Positions 53,222 through 63,635 of a stretch of DNA of 63,635 bases are shown here, in pieces (the stretch's first letter is position 1; each line of letters starts with the position of its first letter). The position numbers were made by a program, and so were the translations under genes. This DNA is from Pocillopora damicornis (Eukaryota). The DNA is taken from assembly GCF_003704095.1 (NCBI RefSeq), contig NW_020844094.1, positions 1 to 63,635 on the forward strand, given 5' to 3'. Under the pieces are notes generated by a model. The model was not told the DNA's origin. It saw nothing but the letters and a program-made list of their open reading frames with translations, and ran no database searches.

Positions 53222-53811
53222 TTTCATCTTGTTTTCAGTCCTGAGCAGCTGTTATAAACTCAGTTCGAGCATGGAATGCTGAAAGTGATGGAAGGTGACG
53301 CTCGTCAACTGAGGCATGTGTTGAGGCCGAGAATTAAAATTCCTCCCAGTTTGCCAAGTCTGTGGCGGTCCTGCCTTTCAAAATTGCAATTAGTTTACAT
53401 AGTATCTACATTAATGTTGTAATTTCAACGAATAAGAAAACATTCTCCGTGCATGACACTTGAAAGACAAAAAATGAGGAAAGAGAAAAATGATTTAAAG
53501 ATTATTGATTAGCAAGAAAGTTTACTTAATAATATCTTGAAGAAACATCTGNNNNNNNNNNATCTATGGTATCTACTTTAATACCATACGTTTGTAACAT
53601 CTTTGAAATTCTACGAGCCTTATGACAAGCCTGTTAACTTCTATTAAATTTACAAACAGACGGTAGATCAAGGAGTAGTTGCTGTGATTGGTCGACGAAA
53701 TCTCTTTTGAACAGTGGGCGAANNNNNNNNNNNNNNAGACAGAGACTGTTCTGACTTTTCTTGTTCTTTCACATTGGAAACAAAGAAACAGCAGCCACAT
53801 TACTGATATCG

Positions 53812-55085
53812 TCATCTGTAACACTTAAGAACGCTATCAAACGTGGTGAAGTAGCCTCTATCAGGTCCACTGAGAGTTAATACAATAAACAAAAATATAC
53901 TTTGTCATTTTTAATGACACCNNNNNNNNNNNNNNNNNNNNNNNNNNNNNNNNNNNNNNNNNNNNNNNNNNNNNNNNNNNNNNNNNNNNNNNNNNNNNNN
54001 NNNNNNNNNNNNNNNNNNNNNNNNNNNNNNNNNNNNNNNNNNNNNNNNNNNNNNNNNNNNNNNNNNNNNNNNNNNNNNNNNNNNNNNNNNNNNNNNNNNN
54101 NNNNNNNNNNNNNNNNNNNNNNNNNNNNNNNNNNNNNNNNNNNNNNNNNNNNNNNNNNNNNNNNNNNNNNNNNNNNNNNNNNNNNNNNNNNNNNNNNNNN
54201 NNNNNNNNNNNNNNNNNNNNNNNNNNNNNNNNNNNNNNNNNNNNNNNNNNNNNNNNNNNNNNNNNNNNNNNNNNNNNNNNNNNNNNNNNNNNNNNNNNNN
54301 NNNNGACATAACATTACCCACCAGCTAAAGTATCTTTTTCCCTCATACGTTCCGTCGCGCCTACGGTAACCTAACCCAACCGGTTCTTCTGAATAAAGAA
54401 AAAATTTTCAGTTATCTAAAGCAAGAGAAAATCAATATAANNNNNNNNNNNNNNNNNNNNNNNNNNNNNNNNNNNNNNNNNNNNNNNNNNNNNNNNNNNN
54501 NNNNNNNNNNNNNNNNNNNNNNNNNNNNNNNNNNNNNNNNNNNNNNNNNNNNNNNNNNNNNNNNNNNNNNNNNNNNNNNNNNNNNNNNNNNNNNNNNNNN
54601 NNNNNNNNNNNNNNNNNNNNNNNNNNNNNNNNNNNNNNNNNNNNNNNNNNNNNNNNNNNNNNNNNNNNNNNNNNNNNNNNNNNNNNNNNNNNNNNNNNNN
54701 NNNNNNNNNNNNNNNNNNNNNNNNNNNNNNNNNNNNNNNNNNNNNNNNNNNNNNNNNNNNNNNNNNNNNNNNNNNNNNNNNNNNNNNNNNNNNNNNNNNN
54801 NNNNNNNNNNNNNNNNNNNNNNNNNNNNNNNNNNNNNNNNNNNNNNNNNNNNNNNNNNNNNNNNNNNNNNNNNNNNNNNNNNNNNNNNNNNNNNNNNNNN
54901 NNNNNNNNNNNNNNNNNNNNNNNNNNNNNNNNNNNNNNNNNNNNNNNNNTCTAACTCTACGCCGAGCTGATTTCCAAGTCCATAGACAGGTCCGACGTAC
55001 CTGGCTGTTCCTCGAACTTTCCATGACCAACCTGCAAACAATACCTTCATACCTACTTTAATATCATTAATTGATTTAGGCTTGA
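53812..55085 (-). CDS. Duplicated CAP-Gly terminal exon cassette (copy 2)
   Basis: ~54950-55085 KPKSINDIKVGMKVLFAGWSWKVRGTARYVGPVYGLGNQLGVEL; ~54322-54388 EPVGLGYRRRDGTYEGKRYFS; 53812-53869 CGPDRGYFTTFDSVLKCYR*. Together these match the CAP-Gly pattern G.V.YVG...GVEL...DG...G.RYF.C.P..G.F. Confidence 0.7.
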
Positions 55086-55319
55086 ANNNNNNNNNNNNNN
55101 NNNNNNNNNNNNNNNNNNNNNNNNNNNNNNNNNNNNNNNNNNNNNNNNNNNNNNNNNNNNNNNNNNNNNNNNNNNNNNNNNNNNNNATTTATCGTAATTA
55201 GGCGTAATTTCAGCGTCCTAGGACATTTCACTAAATTCATAATATTATCAAACTGACAGAAGCACAAACACTATTAGCCCTCCCTAGTAGTGGAAACCAA
55301 AACAATATCTATGCCATTG

Positions 55320-55440
55320 ATTCAGTATCTTTCGATCCATCTTTTTGATATCTTTCAGTATCTTTCGATCAATCTTTTGATATCTTTCAGTATCTTTCGA
55401 TCCATCTTCGGATATCTCTCAGTATCTTTTGATCTATTTT
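55320..55440. repeat. ~33-bp tandem repeat, about 4 copies
   Basis: ttcagtatctttcgatccatctttttgatatct and variants. Confidence 0.8.
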
Positions 55441-56138
55441 ACAGAATCACGGGTCTTTCTATAATTTACTCACCTATTTATTACTAGATACTACAGCTTG
55501 TCTTAGGACAAAGCTTTGCCCTTTTCCTTTTATTTATTTTTGCACCAGTTCATTTAGTTTCAAGTCTGTATTTCTTTTCGATTTGTTTTGTTTTGTTTTT
55601 TTATTTCATCGTGTTTTCAGTCCTGAGCAGCTGTTATAAACTCAGTGACGCTCGCCAACTGAGGCATGTGTTGAGGCCGAGGATTAAAATTCCTCCCAGT
55701 TTGCCAAGTTTGTGGCGGTCCTGCCTTTCAAAATTGCAATTAGTTTGCATAGTATCTACCTTAACAAATCAGAAAACATTTTCCGTGCATGACACTGGAA
55801 AGACAAAAAAATGAGGAAAGAGAAAAATGATTTAATTAGCAAGAAAGTTTATTTAATAATATCTTGAAGAAACATCTGGAAATTAAGAATCTATGGTATC
55901 TAATTTAATACCATACGTTTGTAAAATATTTGAAATTCTACGAGCCTTATGACAAGCCTGTTAACTTCTATTGAATTTGCAAACAGACGGTAGACCAAGG
56001 AGTAGTTGCTGTGATTGGTCGACGAAATCTCTTTTGAACAGTGGGCGAACATCTCAAGGTGGTAGTCAGAGACTGTTCTGACTTTTCTTGTTCTTTGACA
56101 TTGGAAGCAAAGAAACAGCAGCCACATTACTGATATCG

Positions 56139-59100
56139 TCATCTGTAACACTTAAGAACGTTATCAAACGTGGTGAAGCAGCCTCTACCAGGTGCACTGA
56201 GGGTTAATACAACNNNNNNNNNNNNNNNNNNNNNNNNNNNNNNNNNNNNNNNNNNNNNNNNNNNNNNNNNNNNNNNNNNNNNNNNNNNNNNNNNNNNNNN
56301 NNNNNNNNNNNNNNNNNNNNNNNNNNNNNNNNNNNNNNNNNNNNNNNNNNNNNNNNNNNNNNNNNNNNNNNNNNNNNNNNNNNNNNNNNNNNNNNNNNNN
56401 NNNNNNNNNNNNNNNNNNNNNNNNNNNNNNNNNNNNNNNNNNNNNNNNNNNNNNNNNNNNNNNNNNNNNNNNNNNNNNNNNNNNNNNNNNNNNNNNNNNN
56501 NNNNNNNNNNNNNNNNNNNNNNNNNNNNNNNNNNNNNNNNNNNNNNNNNNNNNNNNNNNNNNNNNNNNNNNNNNNNNNNNNNNNNNNNNNNNNNNNNNNN
56601 NNNNNNNNNNNNNNNNNNNNNNNNNNNNNNNNNNNNNNNNNNNNNNNNNNNNNNNNNNNNNNNNNNNNNNNNNNNNNNNNNNNNNNNNNNNNNNNNNNNN
56701 NNNNNNNNNNNNNNNNNNNNNNNNNNNNNNNNNNNNNNNNNNNNNNNNNNNNNNNNNNNNNNNNNNNNNNNNNNNNNNNNNNNNNNNNNNNNNNNNNNNN
56801 NNNNNNNNNNNNNNNNNNNNNNNNNNNNNNNNNNNNNNNNNNNNNNNNNNNNNNNNNNNNNNNNNAGTTGATACTTACAGCAGTCGATGTACCGTCTTTT
56901 TAAAAGTTTCAAGTTCACGAACTTTTCCACTTTTATCATGAGCAATAACCCTCACGTATTTTCATTAGAACATTTTAATCATCATATTACCTTCACCTGG
57001 ATCTAACACTATGCCGACGACCAAACCTAGTCCACATACAGGTCCAACGTACTTGACTGTTCCTCGAAGTTTCCCAAACCAACTAAACAATACCTTCATA
57101 CCAACTTCAATATCGCTGATTGATTTGGGCTTGAAGCCTGTTTCATAGTATTACATGCAACAAATAACAAAAACAACATATAAGTAAAACGACCATCATA
57201 CAATTTACATCACAATCATCAATTAGACTTCATTGATGTTTTTGGTCATCAAAGGCCCACCTAACCCAGTAGTTTTACTTGGACCGGAGTTCAAATGACT
57301 TAGCTCTGCGTAACATTATCTACAAACCAGTGCACCCCTCCCCCACCNNNNNNNNNNNNNNNNNNNNNNNNNNNNNNNNNNNNNNNNNNNNNNNNNNNNN
57401 NNNNNNNNNNNNNNNNNNNNNNNNNNNNNNNNNNNNNNNNNNNNNNNNNNNNNNNNNNNNNNNNNNNNNNNNNNNNNNNNNNNNNNNNNNNNNNNNNNNN
57501 NNNNNNNNNNNNNNNNNNNNNNNNNNNCGCCACAGTTTCTATAGAAACCTACCCTCTTTAACCTTGTCATTAGTTGCCCCTATCTTGTTTGTCTCGTCAA
57601 TGGTTTGGTTGGTCCTTTTGTCCATCAGCACAGCTTGGCCTGTCAGGCTTTCTACCTGCTGCACCAGACCCTGCACAGTGGACGTTAAACTGTCTATCTG
57701 CTGTGACTGATCATTCAACTGCTGTGACTGATCACTGAATATAGATGTCAATCGCTCAATCTGCTTTGACTGATCTTTAACCTGATTCTGAGTGGTCTCA
57801 AGGCTGCATACAGCTAAGTTCAAGTGGCTTTCCATGTGTGATTCTAAGAGAGATTTGGTCCTTGTTCTTTGAAACTAAAAAAAGACGATGAGGTTATTGA
57901 ACTCTTTTATTCAACTGCCACACTGGTCGGTAGGAATTTTTTAAACCCTACAGAATGAGAAAATGTATATTCATTTGACAATTCGCTGTAATTCGTTTTA
58001 TGATATGGTTATACAATACAAACGCACGACCTCTCCGCCAAACCTGCAATTGGATATCAACTGAAAGCTGTTTCATACCGCAATTTGGCATCCTAAGTTC
58101 TAAACAAAAAGATGAAAAAGACTTAGTCTTGAATGAGCAGCCAGAGAAATCCTCCCTCGTGCGTAGCGAAAAAAAATCATTCGGGGTCTCAAAATTACTC
58201 CTAAGATTTCGTAATTTATGAATCAGTAAATTGAAATTTAAAAATATTCCTTATAAGTCTTTCGCATTTTCCCTGTGAAGTTTAACGGAGAAAACCTCCT
58301 AGAAGGGATCGTAACGGTGTTATGGATTGTTTCCCTATCGTGGAGCTACCTAGATTAAATTCTGGCAGGCTCACTCATAGCAGAAAATAACGACCTTTAT
58401 ATCCTCTGAATGAAGCCAGAAAAACATTCACAACAGTATTACACATTCTCTAAACACTAGAGCACGGAACTCCTCCAATTGCTAACATAAAACAGGACTA
58501 AGCATGCGTTCTTTCATATAAAGTAGCACTATGTCCCATGCGGGCTGTGTGCATGAACTTTCAATTAAACTCTCGTTAAAATTACTGAGAATCAGTGAGA
58601 ATATTACATCTTACCTTTTCTCGTGAAAAAAATACTTATCAGACCACAATTGTTGGGACATTGAACCGGAAACTTTTGACAGACGTTATGATGTTGTTGA
58701 AGAAAATCGAAAAGAAGTTTTTTAAAATTTCAAAATTCTCTCCGTCTTATGAAAACTATGACCAATAAAGACAGGCTGTTGTACTAACGAAATTTATAGA
58801 GTAAAATACCCACTTTCTTATCAGTAAAGGACCAAAGTTCTCGAACCCAACATTAAAGCCCAACTTTACTAAGATATTTCTGTGTAATAATTTTATATCG
58901 AATAAGAGAAGATACCGAGAGCTCAACAAAATCTTGACTTAATAAAGATTGATAGTCGTCACCACTTTTCCACTTTGGATAAAAAGCAAAAGTTTGAGAT
59001 ACTGCCTTTGTAGAAGCTATATAAAGAATATGTTTTTGTTAACAAACCTGCTTGTTTTTCACGATAAATGATCCTCGACAATATTCACAACTAACTTCCC

Positions 59101-59880
59101 TCCGGACACATTCCGTTATCATGTGATTGTTCATATCTGACCTGGTGAGCTTCTTTTTACATCCTTCATTTGGACACCCCACCACTTTGAACAGGCATTC
59201 TGACTGATGTTTCTTAAGTCATAATTTATCGATAATAAACTGCACTGTAATCATGATCCAATCTGCTAAGACATACAACAGGCTAAAGAAAAGAGAGACT
59301 TGATTGACAGCGAAACAATCGGTTAACTGACGGTTTAGGATCTTAGAAAAGAAATGTGAAATTTACGTGTGACTTGTTGATAAAAATGATATCCCTAAGA
59401 CTAGTGATAAATATTAAATAAACGTTTAGTATAATAGGCACCTATCAAAGATTACCAGACAGGAAGAAAATCTGTCATGTTGTACGCAAACTGCCGACCA
59501 TGACGCCTCAGATTGCAAATACCAGAACAACACCGCTGTTCAGTCCAGATAGTTACTACTGTGCAAGAAACTGTTGAGTTGAGCTCCACAAGTTACCCTT
59601 ATCTGCTTCGTATAACATCATGTCTTGCTGCCTCGATGGTTAAGAGTAGCAGGAATAAGTGCAATGCTTGCTTATTATGAAGGAGACAAATTAAAATGTT
59701 TTAGATTTTTAATTTTTGGGATCAACTGCGAATGAAGTGATAGAGAACGCCCTTACGGTGAATATGACGTAGATACATTACCTGCACAGCTCGGAGTTCT
59801 CCAGTCCAAGGACACCCAACATAAGAACATTTCACCTCGAGATCCAGAATTTTGCGATGACAAGCGACATCTGGAAATAT
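56139..59880 (-). CDS. TRAF-type zinc finger / coiled-coil protein ending in CAP-Gly; 5' RING exons not seen; possibly degenerating
   Basis: 59782-59880 IFPDVACHRKILDLEVKCSYVGCPWTGELRAVQ; 59048-59212 KHQSECLFKVVGCPNEGC...HMITECVRREVSCEYC; ~58615-58696 HHNVCQKFPVQCPNNCG (AA instead of AG acceptor; 82 nt); 57553-57874 coiled coil; 56991-57137 IEVGMKVLF...RGTVKYVGPV...GIVLDPGE; 56139-56196 APGRGCFTTFDNVLKCYR*. Confidence 0.72.
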
Positions 59881-60263: not shown

Positions 60264-60481
60264 GGCTGCAGTTGGCATTAATAGCTTGCTATCTGCCATT
60301 TCAAATTACAGATATTAATTATGATTCGAACAATGTTACACCATCAGTCTTTCTCGCTGCTCAGCACACGTTTNNNNNNNNNNACCTAAATTCAACATTA
60401 AATCCCATTCTTTACTGCTGGAAGATTGGATAAGTAAGACAAGCTGTGAACGACATATTAAGGAAATGGTTTTGTTCATAA
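60264..60481 (+). pseudogene. GPCR 3' fragment, inverted copy of the 50430-51344 gene, with a premature stop
   Basis: LQLALIACYLPFQITDI...LNSTLNPILYCWKIG*VRQAVNDILRKWFCS (GAA to TAA). Confidence 0.75.
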
Positions 60482-61704: not shown

Positions 61705-62113
61705 ATGACGATTTCCCAAAACATTACTGAAAATTTAGAGGAGAAAACCTACGAGCGGTTGTTTTGCTCTCAGGAAATAACTGCAGGAATACGCGGCTAT
61801 CTGATATTTCTTTCGGTGTTCAATGTTTTGCTGGCCATTTGTTCATCTCTGGGGAACATTCTGATCCTGATTGCCCTTCACAAAGCGACTACTCTTCACG
61901 CGCCATCAAAACTGTTTCTCAGATCCCTGGCTACAACTGATCTCCTTGTTGGTGTCATTTCTGAGCCTCTAACCGTCACGTACTGGATTTCAGCGGTGAG
62001 AAAACGATGGGATGAATGTTATAATATATTTCTCACCAGTTTCATTGTGGGGTATCTCCTCTGTGGCATATCTTTGTTGACAATGACTGCAATAAGCGTG
62101 GACAGACTTCTTG
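61705..62113 (+). CDS. Class A GPCR, 5' part (TM1-TM3), truncated by a gap; paralogue or allele of 39745
   Basis: MTISQNITEN...LGNILILIALHK...AISVDRLL; the upstream flank (61380-61704) is also similar to ~39293-39744. Confidence 0.85.
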
Positions 62114-63497
62114 NNNNNNNNNNNNNNNNNNNNNNNNNNNNNNNNNNNNNNNNNNNNNNNNNNNNNNNNNNNNNNNNNNNNNNNNNNNNNNNNNNNNNNN
62201 NNNNNNNNNNNNNGGCCTTTTCGATGAAAGTGAACGAGAGACCATGAAGTTGAGTCACATAAAAATGTTGAAAAGCTGTTGACGGCGGGATAAGCTTACA
62301 AGCTAATTATGATGACCGACGAATGAACACCTGCATCAAAANNNNNNNNNNNNNNNNNNNNNNNNNNNNNNNNNNNNNNNNNNNNNNNNNNNNNNNNNNN
62401 NNNNNNNNNNNNNNNNNNNNNNNNNNNNNNNNNNNNNNNNNNNNNNNNNNNNNNNNNNNNNNNNNNNNNNNNNNNNNNNNNNNNNNNNNNNNNNNNNNNN
62501 NNNNNNNNNNNNNNNNNNNNNNNNNNNNNNNNNNNNNNNNNNNNNNNNNNNNNNNNNNNNNNNNNNNNNNNNNNNNNNNNNNNNNNNNNNNNNNNNNNNN
62601 NNNNNNNNNNNNNNNNNNNNNNNNNNNNNNNNNNNNNNNNNNNNNNNNNNNNNNNNNNNNNNNNNNNNNNNNNNNNNNNNNNNNNNNNNNNNNNNNNNNN
62701 NNNNNNNNNNNNNNNNNNNNNNNNNNNNNNNNNNNNNNNNNNNNNNNNNNNNNNNNNNNNNNNNNNNNNNNNNNNNNNNNNNNNNNNNNNNNNNNNNNNN
62801 NNNNNNNNNNNNNNNNNNNNNNNNNNNNNNNNNNNGTGCATGAGTAAATGGAGACGTTACAGAATTAATTCCGTCCTTATCAATATATCTTACGCCATCG
62901 ATGTCATGTGACGTATAAATCAAATAAGAATTTCTGGGATAAAAAAATTATNNNNNNNNNNNNNNNNNNNNNNNNNNNNNNNNNNNNNNNNNNNNNNNNN
63001 NNNNNNNNNNNNNNNNNNNNNNNNNNNNNNNNNNNNNNNNNNNNNNNNNNNNNNNNNNNNNNNNNNNNNNNNNNNNNNNNNNNNNNNNNNNNNNNNNNNN
63101 NNNNNNNNNNNNNNNNNNNNNNNNNNNNNNNNNNNNNNNNNNNNNNNNNNNNNNNNNNNNNNNNNNNNNNNNNNNNNNNNNNNNNNNNNNNNNNNNNNNN
63201 NNNNNNNNNNNNNNNNNNNNNNNNNNNNNNNNNNNNNNNNNNNNNNNNNNNNNNNNNNNNNNNNNNNNNNNNNNNNNNNNNNNNNNNNNNNNNNNNNNNN
63301 NNNNNNNNNNNNNNNNNNNNNNNNNNNNNNNNNNNNNNNNNNNNNNNNNNNNNNNNNNNNNNNNNNNNNNNNNNNNNNNNNNNNNNNNNNNNNNNNNNNN
63401 NNNNNNNNNNNNNNNNNNNNNNNNNNNNNNNNNNNNNNNNNNNNNNNNNNNNNNNNNNNNNNNNNNNNNNNNNNNNNNNNNNNNNNGATCGATATTC

Positions 63498-63635
63498 ACC
63501 TTCACACGGATCTAATTCTACGCCGATGAAATGAAGTACACGTTCGTGTACAAGTACAGGTCCGACGTACTTGACTGTTCCTCGAAGTTTCCTAAACCTT
63601 TGAAAAAACAATACCTTCATACCTACTTCAATATA
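63498..63635 (-). CDS. CAP-Gly exon (copy 3), from another paralogue or cassette extending beyond the window
   Basis: IEVGMKVLFFQRFRKLRGTVKYVGPVLVHERVLHFIGVELDPCE, then a G|gtgaat donor. Confidence 0.7.

Follow-up and report, generated by a model that had tools for sequence, protein, structure and literature searches.

The TRAF proteins use a MATH domain to link immune receptors to ubiquitin signalling, and corals possess unusually large repertoires of both TRAFs and TNF receptors. TRAF6, like a canonical paralog found on scaffold C2822 of the Pocillopora damicornis genome, harbors a C3HC3D-type RING, a post-RING linker, successive TRAF zinc fingers, and a coiled coil. All of these recur in the gene family described here, whereas the TRAF-C/MATH domain does not. 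TRAF7, which is widespread in animals, consists of a RING, TRAF zinc fingers, a coiled coil, and C-terminal WD40 repeats, and so provides a precedent for the replacement of MATH by another C-terminal interaction domain. The coral family follows the same design, with one CAP-Gly domain instead of the WD40 repeats and with members found only in Pocilloporidae. We regard this likeness of architecture as an analogy, and homology of the C-terminal swap is not claimed.

CYLD is a CAP-Gly protein of the TRAF and NF-kB pathway, and its third CAP-Gly domain is the best structural match to the modelled domain of the coral family; neither its CAP-Gly domains nor those of the family carry the canonical GKNDG motif. 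However, CYLD, which lacks both a RING and TRAF zinc fingers, is a deubiquitinase of the USP type and carries three CAP-Gly domains, whereas the family fuses a single CAP-Gly to the ligase/adaptor side. The CAP-Gly domains of dynactin p150Glued and CLIP-170 share the strand pattern and the 'RYF.C....G.F' end motif with the family, and 1txq is the closest by sequence among solved structures (E 7.5e-5). They differ in that the family lacks the conserved GKNDG motif and groove tryptophan that hold EEY/F tails, and has an insertion of about 8 residues ahead of the GKNDG position.

The locus considered here lies within a window of 63,635 nucleotides, which is the whole stretch of P. damicornis DNA that was analysed (contig NW_020844094.1). 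It belongs to a family, which exists as such, of TRAF-type RING, zinc-finger, and coiled-coil genes with a CAP-Gly domain in place of the C-terminal MATH domain. Full-length members run from a RING through three to four TRAF zinc fingers and a coiled coil of about 90 residues to the CAP-Gly. The family is small, tandemly copied, and was found here only in the pocilloporid corals Pocillopora and Stylophora. The window copy is a member of this tandemly amplified TRAF6-like family, in which MATH has been replaced by a CAP-Gly domain, and is itself a shortened and partly decayed one. The features of the window copy and of the related elements around it are as follows.

59782-59880, minus strand: exon A, TRAF post-RING linker and start of zinc finger 1, phase 0 at both ends
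59048-59212, minus strand: exon B, TRAF-type zinc finger (zf-TRAF PF02176, 44.1 bits, E 3.4e-11)
58615-58696, minus strand: exon C, start of the second zf-TRAF (E 7e-4), degenerate
58080-58101, minus strand: C2 remnant, the last ~21 nt of the third zinc-finger exon
57553-57874, minus strand: exon D, end of the zinc-finger region and a coiled coil of ~100 aa, ending in phase 1
57348-57527: assembly gap within the intron between exons D and E
57138-57154, minus strand: ancestral 5' extension of exon E (relatives have 5 codons), which in the window copy is either intronic or out of frame
56991-57137, minus strand: exon E, first CAP-Gly exon, phase 1 at both ends, RNA joint at 56991
56214-56865: assembly gap, intronic, concealing the middle CAP-Gly exon of the window copy
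56139-56196, minus strand: exon F, last CAP-Gly exon, coding 56196-56142, stop 56141-56139
53812-55086, minus strand: second CAP-Gly cassette (E' 55086-54952, middle exon 54388-54322, F' 53869-53812)
63501-63632, minus strand: another first CAP-Gly exon, the third, incomplete because of gaps and the end of the window; 95.6% identity to full-length P0214
44384-44554, minus strand: solitary TRAF-type RING exon of the same family, no following exons detected

A preliminary description of 59880-56139, made from the letters, had recognized the post-RING segment, TRAF zinc fingers, and coiled coil, and all are present on the minus strand, as judged from profile matches and a TRAF6 alignment. Searches were made exon by exon or with database proteins, gap letters were left unfilled, and read ends extending loosely into the gaps were set aside. 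Exon A aligns to the TRAF6 post-RING linker and is joined to exon B (59782 to 59212) in RNA from 3 runs. Exon B passes the zf-TRAF cut-off of 27 bits and contains the Met codons with which the gene model of the ortholog begins. Exon D is heptad-rich, its profile matches being weak and confined to coiled-coil profiles, and has an internal alternative acceptor near 57670 that is used in RNA contigs X7 and L013. Exon E matches positions 2-34 of the CAP_GLY profile PF01302 (E 1.4e-3, 19 bits); alone it falls below the Pfam gathering score of 26.5 bits because the domain is split over three exons. The complete domain of the ortholog, P0076, covers the whole profile (1-65) at 46.5 bits, above the cut-off, so the identification of the C-terminal module as a CAP-Gly holds. 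The start of the last exon had to be corrected, since the residues 'VVLTLS' are intron: a gap-free paralog and an RNA joint both place the first base of exon F at 56196, behind an acceptor AG at 56198-56197.

The canonical gene on C2822 carries a RING, zf-TRAF, and, in one terminal exon, the coiled coil together with MATH (TRAF-mep_MATH, 57 bits); the exons that it shares with the family are 51-73% identical. In the CAP-Gly family this terminal exon has been cut behind the coiled coil. The coiled-coil exon now ends at a donor and is joined in phase 1 to a CAP-Gly cassette of three exons, the last of which closes with a stop. The phase-1 fit between the coiled-coil exon and the CAP-Gly exon at 57137 had been read correctly, and donor and acceptor phases at this junction agree in every readable copy. 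The frame closes after the CAP-Gly at 56141-56139 with no MATH, as also described, and a tblastn search of the 97-kb scaffold with the MATH part of the C2822 gene gave no match at E <= 0.05.

Logan contigs assembled from RNA runs of four studies contain the joints A-B, B-C, C-D, and D-E-middle-F, in which the coiled-coil exon is spliced to CAP-Gly exons and not to MATH. In contig L013, exon D is spliced in frame to exon E at the position equivalent to 57154. Contig X1 has middle-exon sequence between E and F, its record 4 appearing 2 nt short of frame at the D-E junction. The exact joint 57553 to 57137, which had been put forward as a check, occurs in no RNA contig. The spliced contigs are alleles or orthologs about 95% identical to the window copy that use the upstream acceptor, and the contigs identical to it are unspliced.

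The three pieces of the window copy are separate contigs linked by runs of N, and the scaffold is scrambled elsewhere: for example, an exon A lies above a RING exon (75-76 kb), and a stretch at 65-70 kb is duplicated in inverted orientation. A fragmented, repeat-rich cluster of this kind might have brought TRAF and CAP-Gly exons together merely through a scaffolding error across the gaps, but this is the most improbable of the explanations considered, and it is already contradicted. The 180-N gap in the joining intron, to which the preliminary description had drawn attention, is bridged by spliced RNA contigs that link D, E, the middle exon, and F, and the order of D before E recurs in a paralog of the same scaffold, within a single contig free of gaps (L005, 2214-2696 then 4529-4669). 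The same order is found in gene models of other assemblies, one of them chromosome-scale. Since the larger gap hides an exon, the frame over 56214-56865 cannot be followed in the window copy; in a second gap-free paralog on the scaffold, which has a complete three-exon cassette followed by a stop, this middle exon sits between E and F, giving a CAP-Gly domain of three exons, and the frame across it is intact both there and in the Pocillopora verrucosa ortholog.

RING exons are present elsewhere on the same scaffold. The second CAP-Gly cassette, at 53812-55086, is probably part of another gene copy. The idea that it supplies alternative last exons to the window gene is disfavoured because RNA joins it to a D-like exon different from the D of the window copy, and because the scaffold is scrambled.

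The ortholog of the window copy is P. verrucosa LOC131770249, whose models P0075/P0076 (230-232 aa) comprise a coiled coil and a CAP-Gly. Identity between the window copy and P0076 is 96.6% for exon B, 92.6% for D, 93.9% for E, and 100% for F. The model begins inside exon B and skips exon C. An exact protein look-up for the P. verrucosa locus (P0065, P0066) returned no record. Models with RING, zf-TRAF, coiled coil, and CAP-Gly occur in P. verrucosa, P. meandrina, and Stylophora pistillata, so that the combination of zf-TRAF with CAP_GLY anticipated for coral proteomes is found in three other pocilloporid corals. The full-length RING, zf-TRAF, and CAP_GLY models are P0215, P0214, P0189, P0190, and P0213, which bear automatic names such as "TRAF4-like" and "TRAF6-like". 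Pfam finds zf-TRAF in these relatives at 71-87 bits over two stretches, CAP_GLY in P0189 at 44.6 bits, and a RING in P0189, P0190, and P0215. The Pfam scans gave no MATH or WD40 match in the full-length relatives, and no USP/UCH match in these or the ortholog. Among 218 proteins retrieved, both halves of the architecture were matched only by entries from Pocillopora and Stylophora and by one further entry with no source given. With these models and the MATH-bearing paralog, the proposal of a domain-swapped adaptor family is borne out for the family; the window copy itself is not a full adaptor.

The decay of the window copy can be followed exon by exon. As the preliminary description had cautioned, RING exons are not visible for it, and none lies in the contig of exon A or within 3.5 kb upstream of that exon. 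The acceptor of exon C reads CAA, against CAG in a paralog, and the frame from exon C into exon D is broken by 4 extra T, which the paralog alignment reveals; the CAA is kept in an unspliced RNA contig 99% identical to the window copy, and the 4 T are absent from another contig. Exon C2, full-length in a paralog (C729:64857-64934), is deleted here but for its last ~21 nt, and paralog RNA contigs match the window at C2 over those 21 nt only. The normal family acceptor of exon E lies at 57154, 17 nt upstream of 57137, and here has CAT for CAG; one G is also missing, whereas the ortholog protein retains the additional residues of the 5' extension. Owing to this pair of changes, the acceptor at 57137 is the next AG, and in frame. 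If it is used, an open frame persists from a Met in exon B, with exon C skipped, through the coiled coil into the CAP-Gly.

These lesions raise the question of whether the window copy is a transcribed pseudogene, a decaying partial duplicate that yields no functional protein, in which case the architecture of the family would still be real. We hold this to be possible, though somewhat unlikely. Besides the absent RING exons and the damage to C, C2, and the ancestral acceptor of E, it would account for an exon C that is frame-broken in the ortholog transcript L013 too, for a CAP-Gly dN/dS near 1, and for the unspliced state of the RNA identical to this copy. On the other hand, the open frame from exon B to D, E, and F survives in both species, and the ortholog RefSeq models are RNA-supported with several isoforms. 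The loss of the E acceptor and the 1-nt deletion jointly preserve the frame, for which the chance is about 1 in 3, and all length differences among five E exons are multiples of three. It is very unlikely that the locus represents two genes, one a TRAF fragment without MATH and the other a small independent CAP-Gly gene, joined only by read-through transcripts. Some Stylophora models named 'tubulin-folding cofactor B-like' or 'chaperone E-like' would fit such an arrangement, as would short models with a CAP-Gly only or with a coiled-coil tail and CAP-Gly (P0112, 77 aa; P0201, 164 aa), and transcripts that keep the intron after exon D would stop just past the coiled coil. Yet the phases match at the junction in every readable copy, no start codon precedes the domain core within the first CAP-Gly exon, and the junction is in frame in RNA-derived ORFs and in five full-length models.

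The structure of the family was modelled with AF2 on the relative P0215 rather than on the window copy, from a 12-sequence alignment, with low overall confidence (mean pLDDT 59.7, pTM 0.26). The model contains a single long helix (residues 224-315, pLDDT 83-92) and a CAP-Gly fold (residues 361-446, pLDDT 75-85). Foldseek returned TRAF6 3hcs (1.9e-11) and CYLD CAP-Gly3 7owc_B, with an rmsd of 2.5 A over 78 columns, together with TBCB, dynactin, and CLIP CAP-Gly structures; among solved structures, the N-terminus of the family is closest to the TRAF6 RING-ZF 5vo0 (E 1.6e-33). The core residues of the CAP-Gly are conserved between Pocillopora and Stylophora, and its loops vary. The ortholog has G(YR)ECNG at the position of the ligand motif, whose counterparts are ECNG, ESNG, RRDG, and RHSG in Pocillopora and GNDG or ANDG in Stylophora; these data come from the ortholog, paralogs, and Stylophora, as the equivalent in the window copy falls in an assembly gap. 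The dN/dS ratio is 0.7-1.7 for the cassettes, whereas the RING, A, and D exons give 0.17-0.6. Classical EEY/F binding is doubtful on sequence grounds, given this ratio and the loss of GKNDG and the groove tryptophan. The earlier suggestion of a variable recognition module would fit the loop variation and a dN/dS near 1, but relaxed constraint explains them equally well.

On the explanation that we consider likely, full-length members of the domain-swapped family would form coiled-coil oligomers, presumably trimers as in TRAFs, with a TRAF6-type RING E3/adaptor head and with the CAP-Gly as the targeting end in the place of MATH. Ubiquitin-signalling activity would then be directed to a CAP-Gly ligand and not to receptor tails. 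Candidate ligands include an acidic-aromatic C-terminal tail, such as those of tubulin or EB, or, as for CYLD, ubiquitin or a proline-rich motif. If the short window copy is translated, its product would be a coiled-coil and CAP-Gly protein lacking a RING, which could co-oligomerise with its full-length paralogs or compete against them. A bolder reading, which we think improbable, takes the array as diversifying intracellular sensors in which a TRAF6-type K63-ubiquitin head is combined with CAP-Gly loops reshaped by positive selection, the loops concerned being the degenerate GKNDG region and the segment that precedes the central strand. If true, the CAP-Gly would recognise microbial or symbiont proteins by their varied C-terminal tails or ubiquitin-like surfaces, and pocilloporid corals would have a receptor-independent trigger of NF-kB-type signalling.

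Domain shuffling in an innate-immune adaptor has a clean natural example in this lineage-specific TRAF subfamily with its CAP-Gly targeting end, which fuses in one protein modules that vertebrates bring together only via separate proteins, namely CYLD with TRAF2 or NEMO. It also offers a testable lead to CAP-Gly recognition beyond the microtubule world. The family was not known to have been described. Literature searches for CAP-Gly with TRAF and coral, CAP-Gly with Pocillopora, and CAP_GLY with zf-TRAF gave no relevant paper on the architecture, and the P. damicornis genome paper names coral-specific TRAFs in general terms only. The proteins are nevertheless already public, but their automatic names, "TRAF4-like" and "tubulin-folding cofactor B-like" among them, conceal the architecture and split the genes, and TRAF7 is an earlier case of MATH replacement.

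The best single-CAP-Gly relatives of the cassette are coral proteins with a coiled coil and a C-terminal CAP-Gly (E 3e-9), represented in the same genome by C33 and in Montipora by the family of XP_068698134.1. They have no RING or TRAF zinc fingers, in contrast to the family described here, and possess a long serine-rich or coiled-coil N-terminal part. A phase-1 intron directly after 'PG(E/Q)' and the ending 'CY(R/G)' followed by a stop are common to both, and on account of these shared features and their closeness in sequence, such proteins are candidate donors of the CAP-Gly cassette.

Full-length members of the family carry a CAP-Gly domain in the place where TRAF proteins have their terminal MATH domain. 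The Pfam domains of these models run from RING to zf-TRAF (71-87 bits) to CAP_GLY (35-45 bits), and the following were recovered by word-based and exhaustive protein searches.

Protein models with RING, zf-TRAF and CAP_GLY domains
P0215, P. verrucosa, 446 aa, named "TNF receptor-associated factor 4-like"
P0214, source unstated, 475 aa
P0189, P. meandrina (CAH3159942.1), 427 aa, unnamed
P0190, S. pistillata (XP_022809455.1), 434 aa, named "TRAF6-like, partial"
P0213, S. pistillata (PFX13106.1), 468 aa, named "TNF receptor-associated factor 4, partial"

In a repeat scan of all 218 retrieved proteins, every exhaustive-search match among them, both a TRAF head and a CAP-Gly tail were matched in 12, 11 of them from Pocillopora or Stylophora and one of unstated source; a further 89 possessed a CAP-Gly domain without a TRAF head. 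Apart from the dual match of unstated source, no fusion was seen outside the Pocilloporidae among these 218 proteins. Since dual matches occur in both genera, the fusion is older than the Pocillopora-Stylophora split. We regard the architecture, its transcription and splicing and, among the retrieved proteins, its restriction to one coral family as established. The preliminary description had known of no earlier account of this architecture, and indeed no paper describing a TRAF + CAP-Gly protein was found, but the proteins themselves can already be found in public databases, where their names are automatic, misleading or split.

The window belongs to an assembly of 234,350,878 bases in 4,393 contigs (the draft genome of P. 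damicornis is given as 234 Mb; PMC6208414), whose proteins are 88-99% identical to Pocillopora database entries. It has a G+C content of 37% and contains 30 runs of N, and the two runs that fall within the family member at 59880-56139 occupy intronic positions.

Exons and gaps of the window copy
59880-59782, minus strand: exon A, TRAF post-RING linker, phase 0/0
59212-59048, minus strand: exon B, zf-TRAF (PF02176, 44.1 bits)
58696-58615, minus strand: exon C, start of a second zf-TRAF
57874-57553, minus strand: exon D, coiled coil of about 107 codons, phase 1 at its end
57348-57527: run of 180 N between exons D and E, intronic
57137-56991, minus strand: exon E, CAP_GLY positions 2-34, both ends in phase 1
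56214-56865: run of 652 N between exons E and F, concealing the middle CAP-Gly exon of this copy
56196-56142, minus strand: exon F, CAP-Gly end, with the stop at 56141-56139

All of the exons in the preliminary description were located on the minus strand, exon D does match E in phase, and the stop does come directly after the CAP-Gly end motif. The residues 'VVLTLS', which it had included in the frame, are intronic, since a paralog on the same scaffold places the acceptor of exon F at the AG at 56198-56197. Its finding of a TRAF-like adaptor with CAP-Gly in place of MATH is real at the level of the family, but the window copy, being damaged and shortened, is a poor representative.

A canonical paralog lies in a gap-free region of another scaffold, C2822, where two RING exons and exons of the A, B and C types are accompanied by a single terminal exon that encodes both the coiled coil and the MATH domain (57 bits against TRAF-mep_MATH). 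Identity to the window copy is 51-73% over its A, B and D parts. As had been proposed, MATH is absent from the CAP-Gly-bearing TRAF, in that tblastn with the C2822 MATH part gave no match in the whole 96,954 bases of C729, the scaffold of the window. Because the coiled coil and MATH share one exon on C2822 and no MATH match occurs on C729, the C729 genes look like TRAFs whose terminal exon was cut past the coiled coil, a new donor site leading to the CAP-Gly exons.

Exon D sequence is present in RNA runs of at least five studies. Splicing was followed in Logan contigs, which are assembled and not raw reads, from four runs of four studies aligned on window 53810-59809.

Exon joints in RNA contigs
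A to B, 59782 / 59212: three runs
B to C, 59048 / 58696: four runs
C to D, 58631 / 57876, separated by 10 letters: a single contig (run X1)
B to an internal D acceptor, near 57670: run X7
D, E, middle-exon sequence and F: one 494-nt contig (X1, record 4)

The middle-exon sequence from X1 was placed on a paralogous exon at 54322-54388, that of the window copy being hidden in the gap. In record 4 (window 57138-57550) there are apparently 12 letters, not the expected 14, between the D and E pieces, which would break the frame; the shortfall is either a real allele shorter by 2 nt or a reporting quirk. A second RNA contig, L013 (1036 nt, fetched via its ORF), is colinear with 59214-58614 and then spliced to 57672-57550, after which the D donor is joined to the equivalent of 57154 and the sequence continues through exon E; its ORF (P0079) is in frame over the junction. 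The expected splicing of coiled coil to CAP-Gly is thus seen in both X1 and L013. At about 94-97% identity to the window, the spliced contigs derive from close alleles or from sister species and cannot be assigned with certainty to the window copy itself; contigs that are 99-100% identical (X3 record 9, X7 record 25, X1 records 5 and 7) are unspliced.

Within the assembly, TRAFs of the CAP-Gly type are found on C729 only, in five copies, the window copy included, and three of the five CAP-Gly cassettes on this scaffold fall within the window. L005 1643-5303 is one contig without gaps, in which E and the middle exon come 1.8 kb after a D exon on the same strand. A full cassette of E, a 66-nt middle exon, F and an immediate stop, with phases 1 and 2 and canonical splice sites, is likewise free of gaps at L005 5404-6640 (minus). 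These paralogs indirectly support continuity across the gaps of the window copy, which the RNA joints back further, again indirectly. The tandem cassettes are more likely to be separate gene copies; that they are alternative last-exon sets of one gene is less favoured, as RNA connects the second window cassette to a D-like exon other than that of the window copy, and scaffold order is unreliable.

Family RING exons lie elsewhere on C729, at 44554, 75395 and 86356. The one at window 44384-44554 (minus) is a lone, intact-looking TRAF-type exon, 81% identical to that of full-length relatives, and no downstream family exons were detected after it. At L005 1643-7821 (C729:64642-70820) two family copies stand face to face in an inverted duplication about a 100-N gap (C729:68303-68402), with the flanking introns mirrored as well; the arrangement may be a genuine palindrome or come from the misjoining of haplotigs. 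Another copy (C729:94252-96495, plus; RING exon 2, A, B and C) is cut short by the end of the scaffold, and its B exon has lost one zinc-ligand cysteine ('CEYG' vs 'CEYC' in the others). Open frames or fragments of rhodopsin-type GPCRs, with DRL- and NPxxY-like motifs, are interspersed among the TRAF and CAP-Gly pieces of the window (41550-42206, 60272-60433 and 61705-62247, plus; 44846-45055, minus), so either the cluster sits within a GPCR array or scaffolding has mixed small contigs of two arrays.

Relative to its paralogs and orthologs, the window copy is damaged. A search of C729 for family RING exons placed none near exon A. The acceptor of exon C reads CAA, in agreement with a 99% identical RNA contig, vs CAG in the 82 kb paralog, and of exon C2, a third zinc-finger exon that is complete at C729:64857-64934, only the last ~21 nt remain (58101-58080). 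Exon C also has four extra T, breaking the frame into exon D; these may be a polymorphism or an assembly error, because one near-identical contig is without them. That RNA-library contig, 98-99% identical, has 4 fewer T than the 7-T run at 58621-58632, and also misses ~536 nt of the next intron (58418-57882). The acceptor that the family uses for exon E is found 17 nt further upstream than the one originally described; it reads CAT in the window vs CAG, and one G is missing from the following GGG. Jointly, these changes make the originally described acceptor both the next AG and in frame, through either compensation or luck, the latter with a probability of about 1 in 3. In P. verrucosa, the ortholog LOC131770249 (isoforms P0074-P0076, P0065 and P0066) matches exons B, D, E and F at 92-100% identity. 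It is modelled as a protein of 137-232 aa whose starting Met lies in exon B; exons C and C2 are skipped, and the coiled coil is followed by a complete CAP-Gly domain (46.5 bits, profile positions 1-65). Exon C is frame-broken in the orthologous transcript L013 too; thus in both species the locus is a shortened family member, which may or may not continue to yield a coiled-coil + CAP-Gly protein. That the window copy is a pseudogene is possible, though less likely than not.

The head of the family is closest to the TRAF6 RING-ZF structure (5vo0, E 1.6e-33), with every zinc ligand of the C3HC3D pattern retained in that alignment. P0215 was modelled with AlphaFold2 on a 12-sequence alignment; the model is poor overall (mean pLDDT 59.7) but confident for a 92-residue helix (224-315, pLDDT 83-92) and for the C-terminal domain (pLDDT 75-85). 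In Foldseek the modelled head matched TRAF6 (3hcs, 1.9e-11), and the modelled tail resembled CAP-Gly3 of CYLD best (7owc_B, rmsd 2.5 A), followed by TBCB, dynactin and CLIP. Among solved CAP-Gly structures, that of dynactin p150 comes nearest in sequence (E 7.5e-5); its GKNDG ligand motif aligns to G(YR)ECNG, preceded by an ~8-residue insertion; paralogs have ESNG, RRDG or RHSG at this position, and Stylophora copies GNDG or ANDG. The groove tryptophan ahead of the central strand is not conserved. Nei-Gojobori dN/dS, calculated per exon with counts summed and from small samples, was 0.7-1.7 for the CAP-Gly cassettes, 0.17-0.56 for RING exons, 0.3-0.6 for exon A and 0.45 for exon D. Every readable E, middle and F exon is open, E exons differ in length only by multiples of three, and between Pocillopora and Stylophora the fold-determining CAP-Gly residues are conserved and three loops vary. 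This fits a maintained core with loops that are free or diversifying, and decay of individual copies is possible.

In TRAFs, an E2 is recruited by the RING together with the first zinc fingers, the coiled coil serves for oligomerisation, and the partner is picked by the C-terminal domain. CAP-Gly domains have C-terminal tails of acidic-aromatic character as ligands; those of CYLD recognise proline-rich motifs and ubiquitin. By analogy with TRAFs, full-length members would recruit E2 through the RING and first zinc fingers and oligomerise via the coiled coil, to act as oligomeric RING adaptors directed at a CAP-Gly ligand rather than at receptor tails; the RING-less window copy could be their competitor or co-oligomer. 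We propose this CAP-Gly targeting only tentatively. Given the degeneracy of the classical ligand motif, tubulin tails are a less likely target than a CYLD-like or novel ligand. The family is not a canonical TRAF, since the defining MATH domain was looked for and is absent, nor is it CYLD, since it has no USP domain. It is alike in design to TRAF7, which also has a non-MATH C-terminal domain, although there it is WD40 and here CAP-Gly.

Among single-CAP-Gly relatives, the best is a coral coiled-coil protein that ends in its CAP-Gly domain (the P0118 family, which includes Montipora XP_068698134.1; E 3e-9). The P. damicornis assembly has a gene of this type on scaffold C33 (L011/L012, G000:C33:62906-67141), which shares with the TRAF-linked cassette a phase-1 intron just past 'PG(E/Q)' and an ending of 'CY(R/G)' followed by the stop. 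Such a gene is a plausible candidate donor of the cassette via exon shuffling. Proteins with 4 to 15 tandem CAP-Gly domains, unrelated to TRAFs, were also encountered in metagenomes and the foraminifer Reticulomyxa filosa (P0088-P0090, P0093 and P0103).
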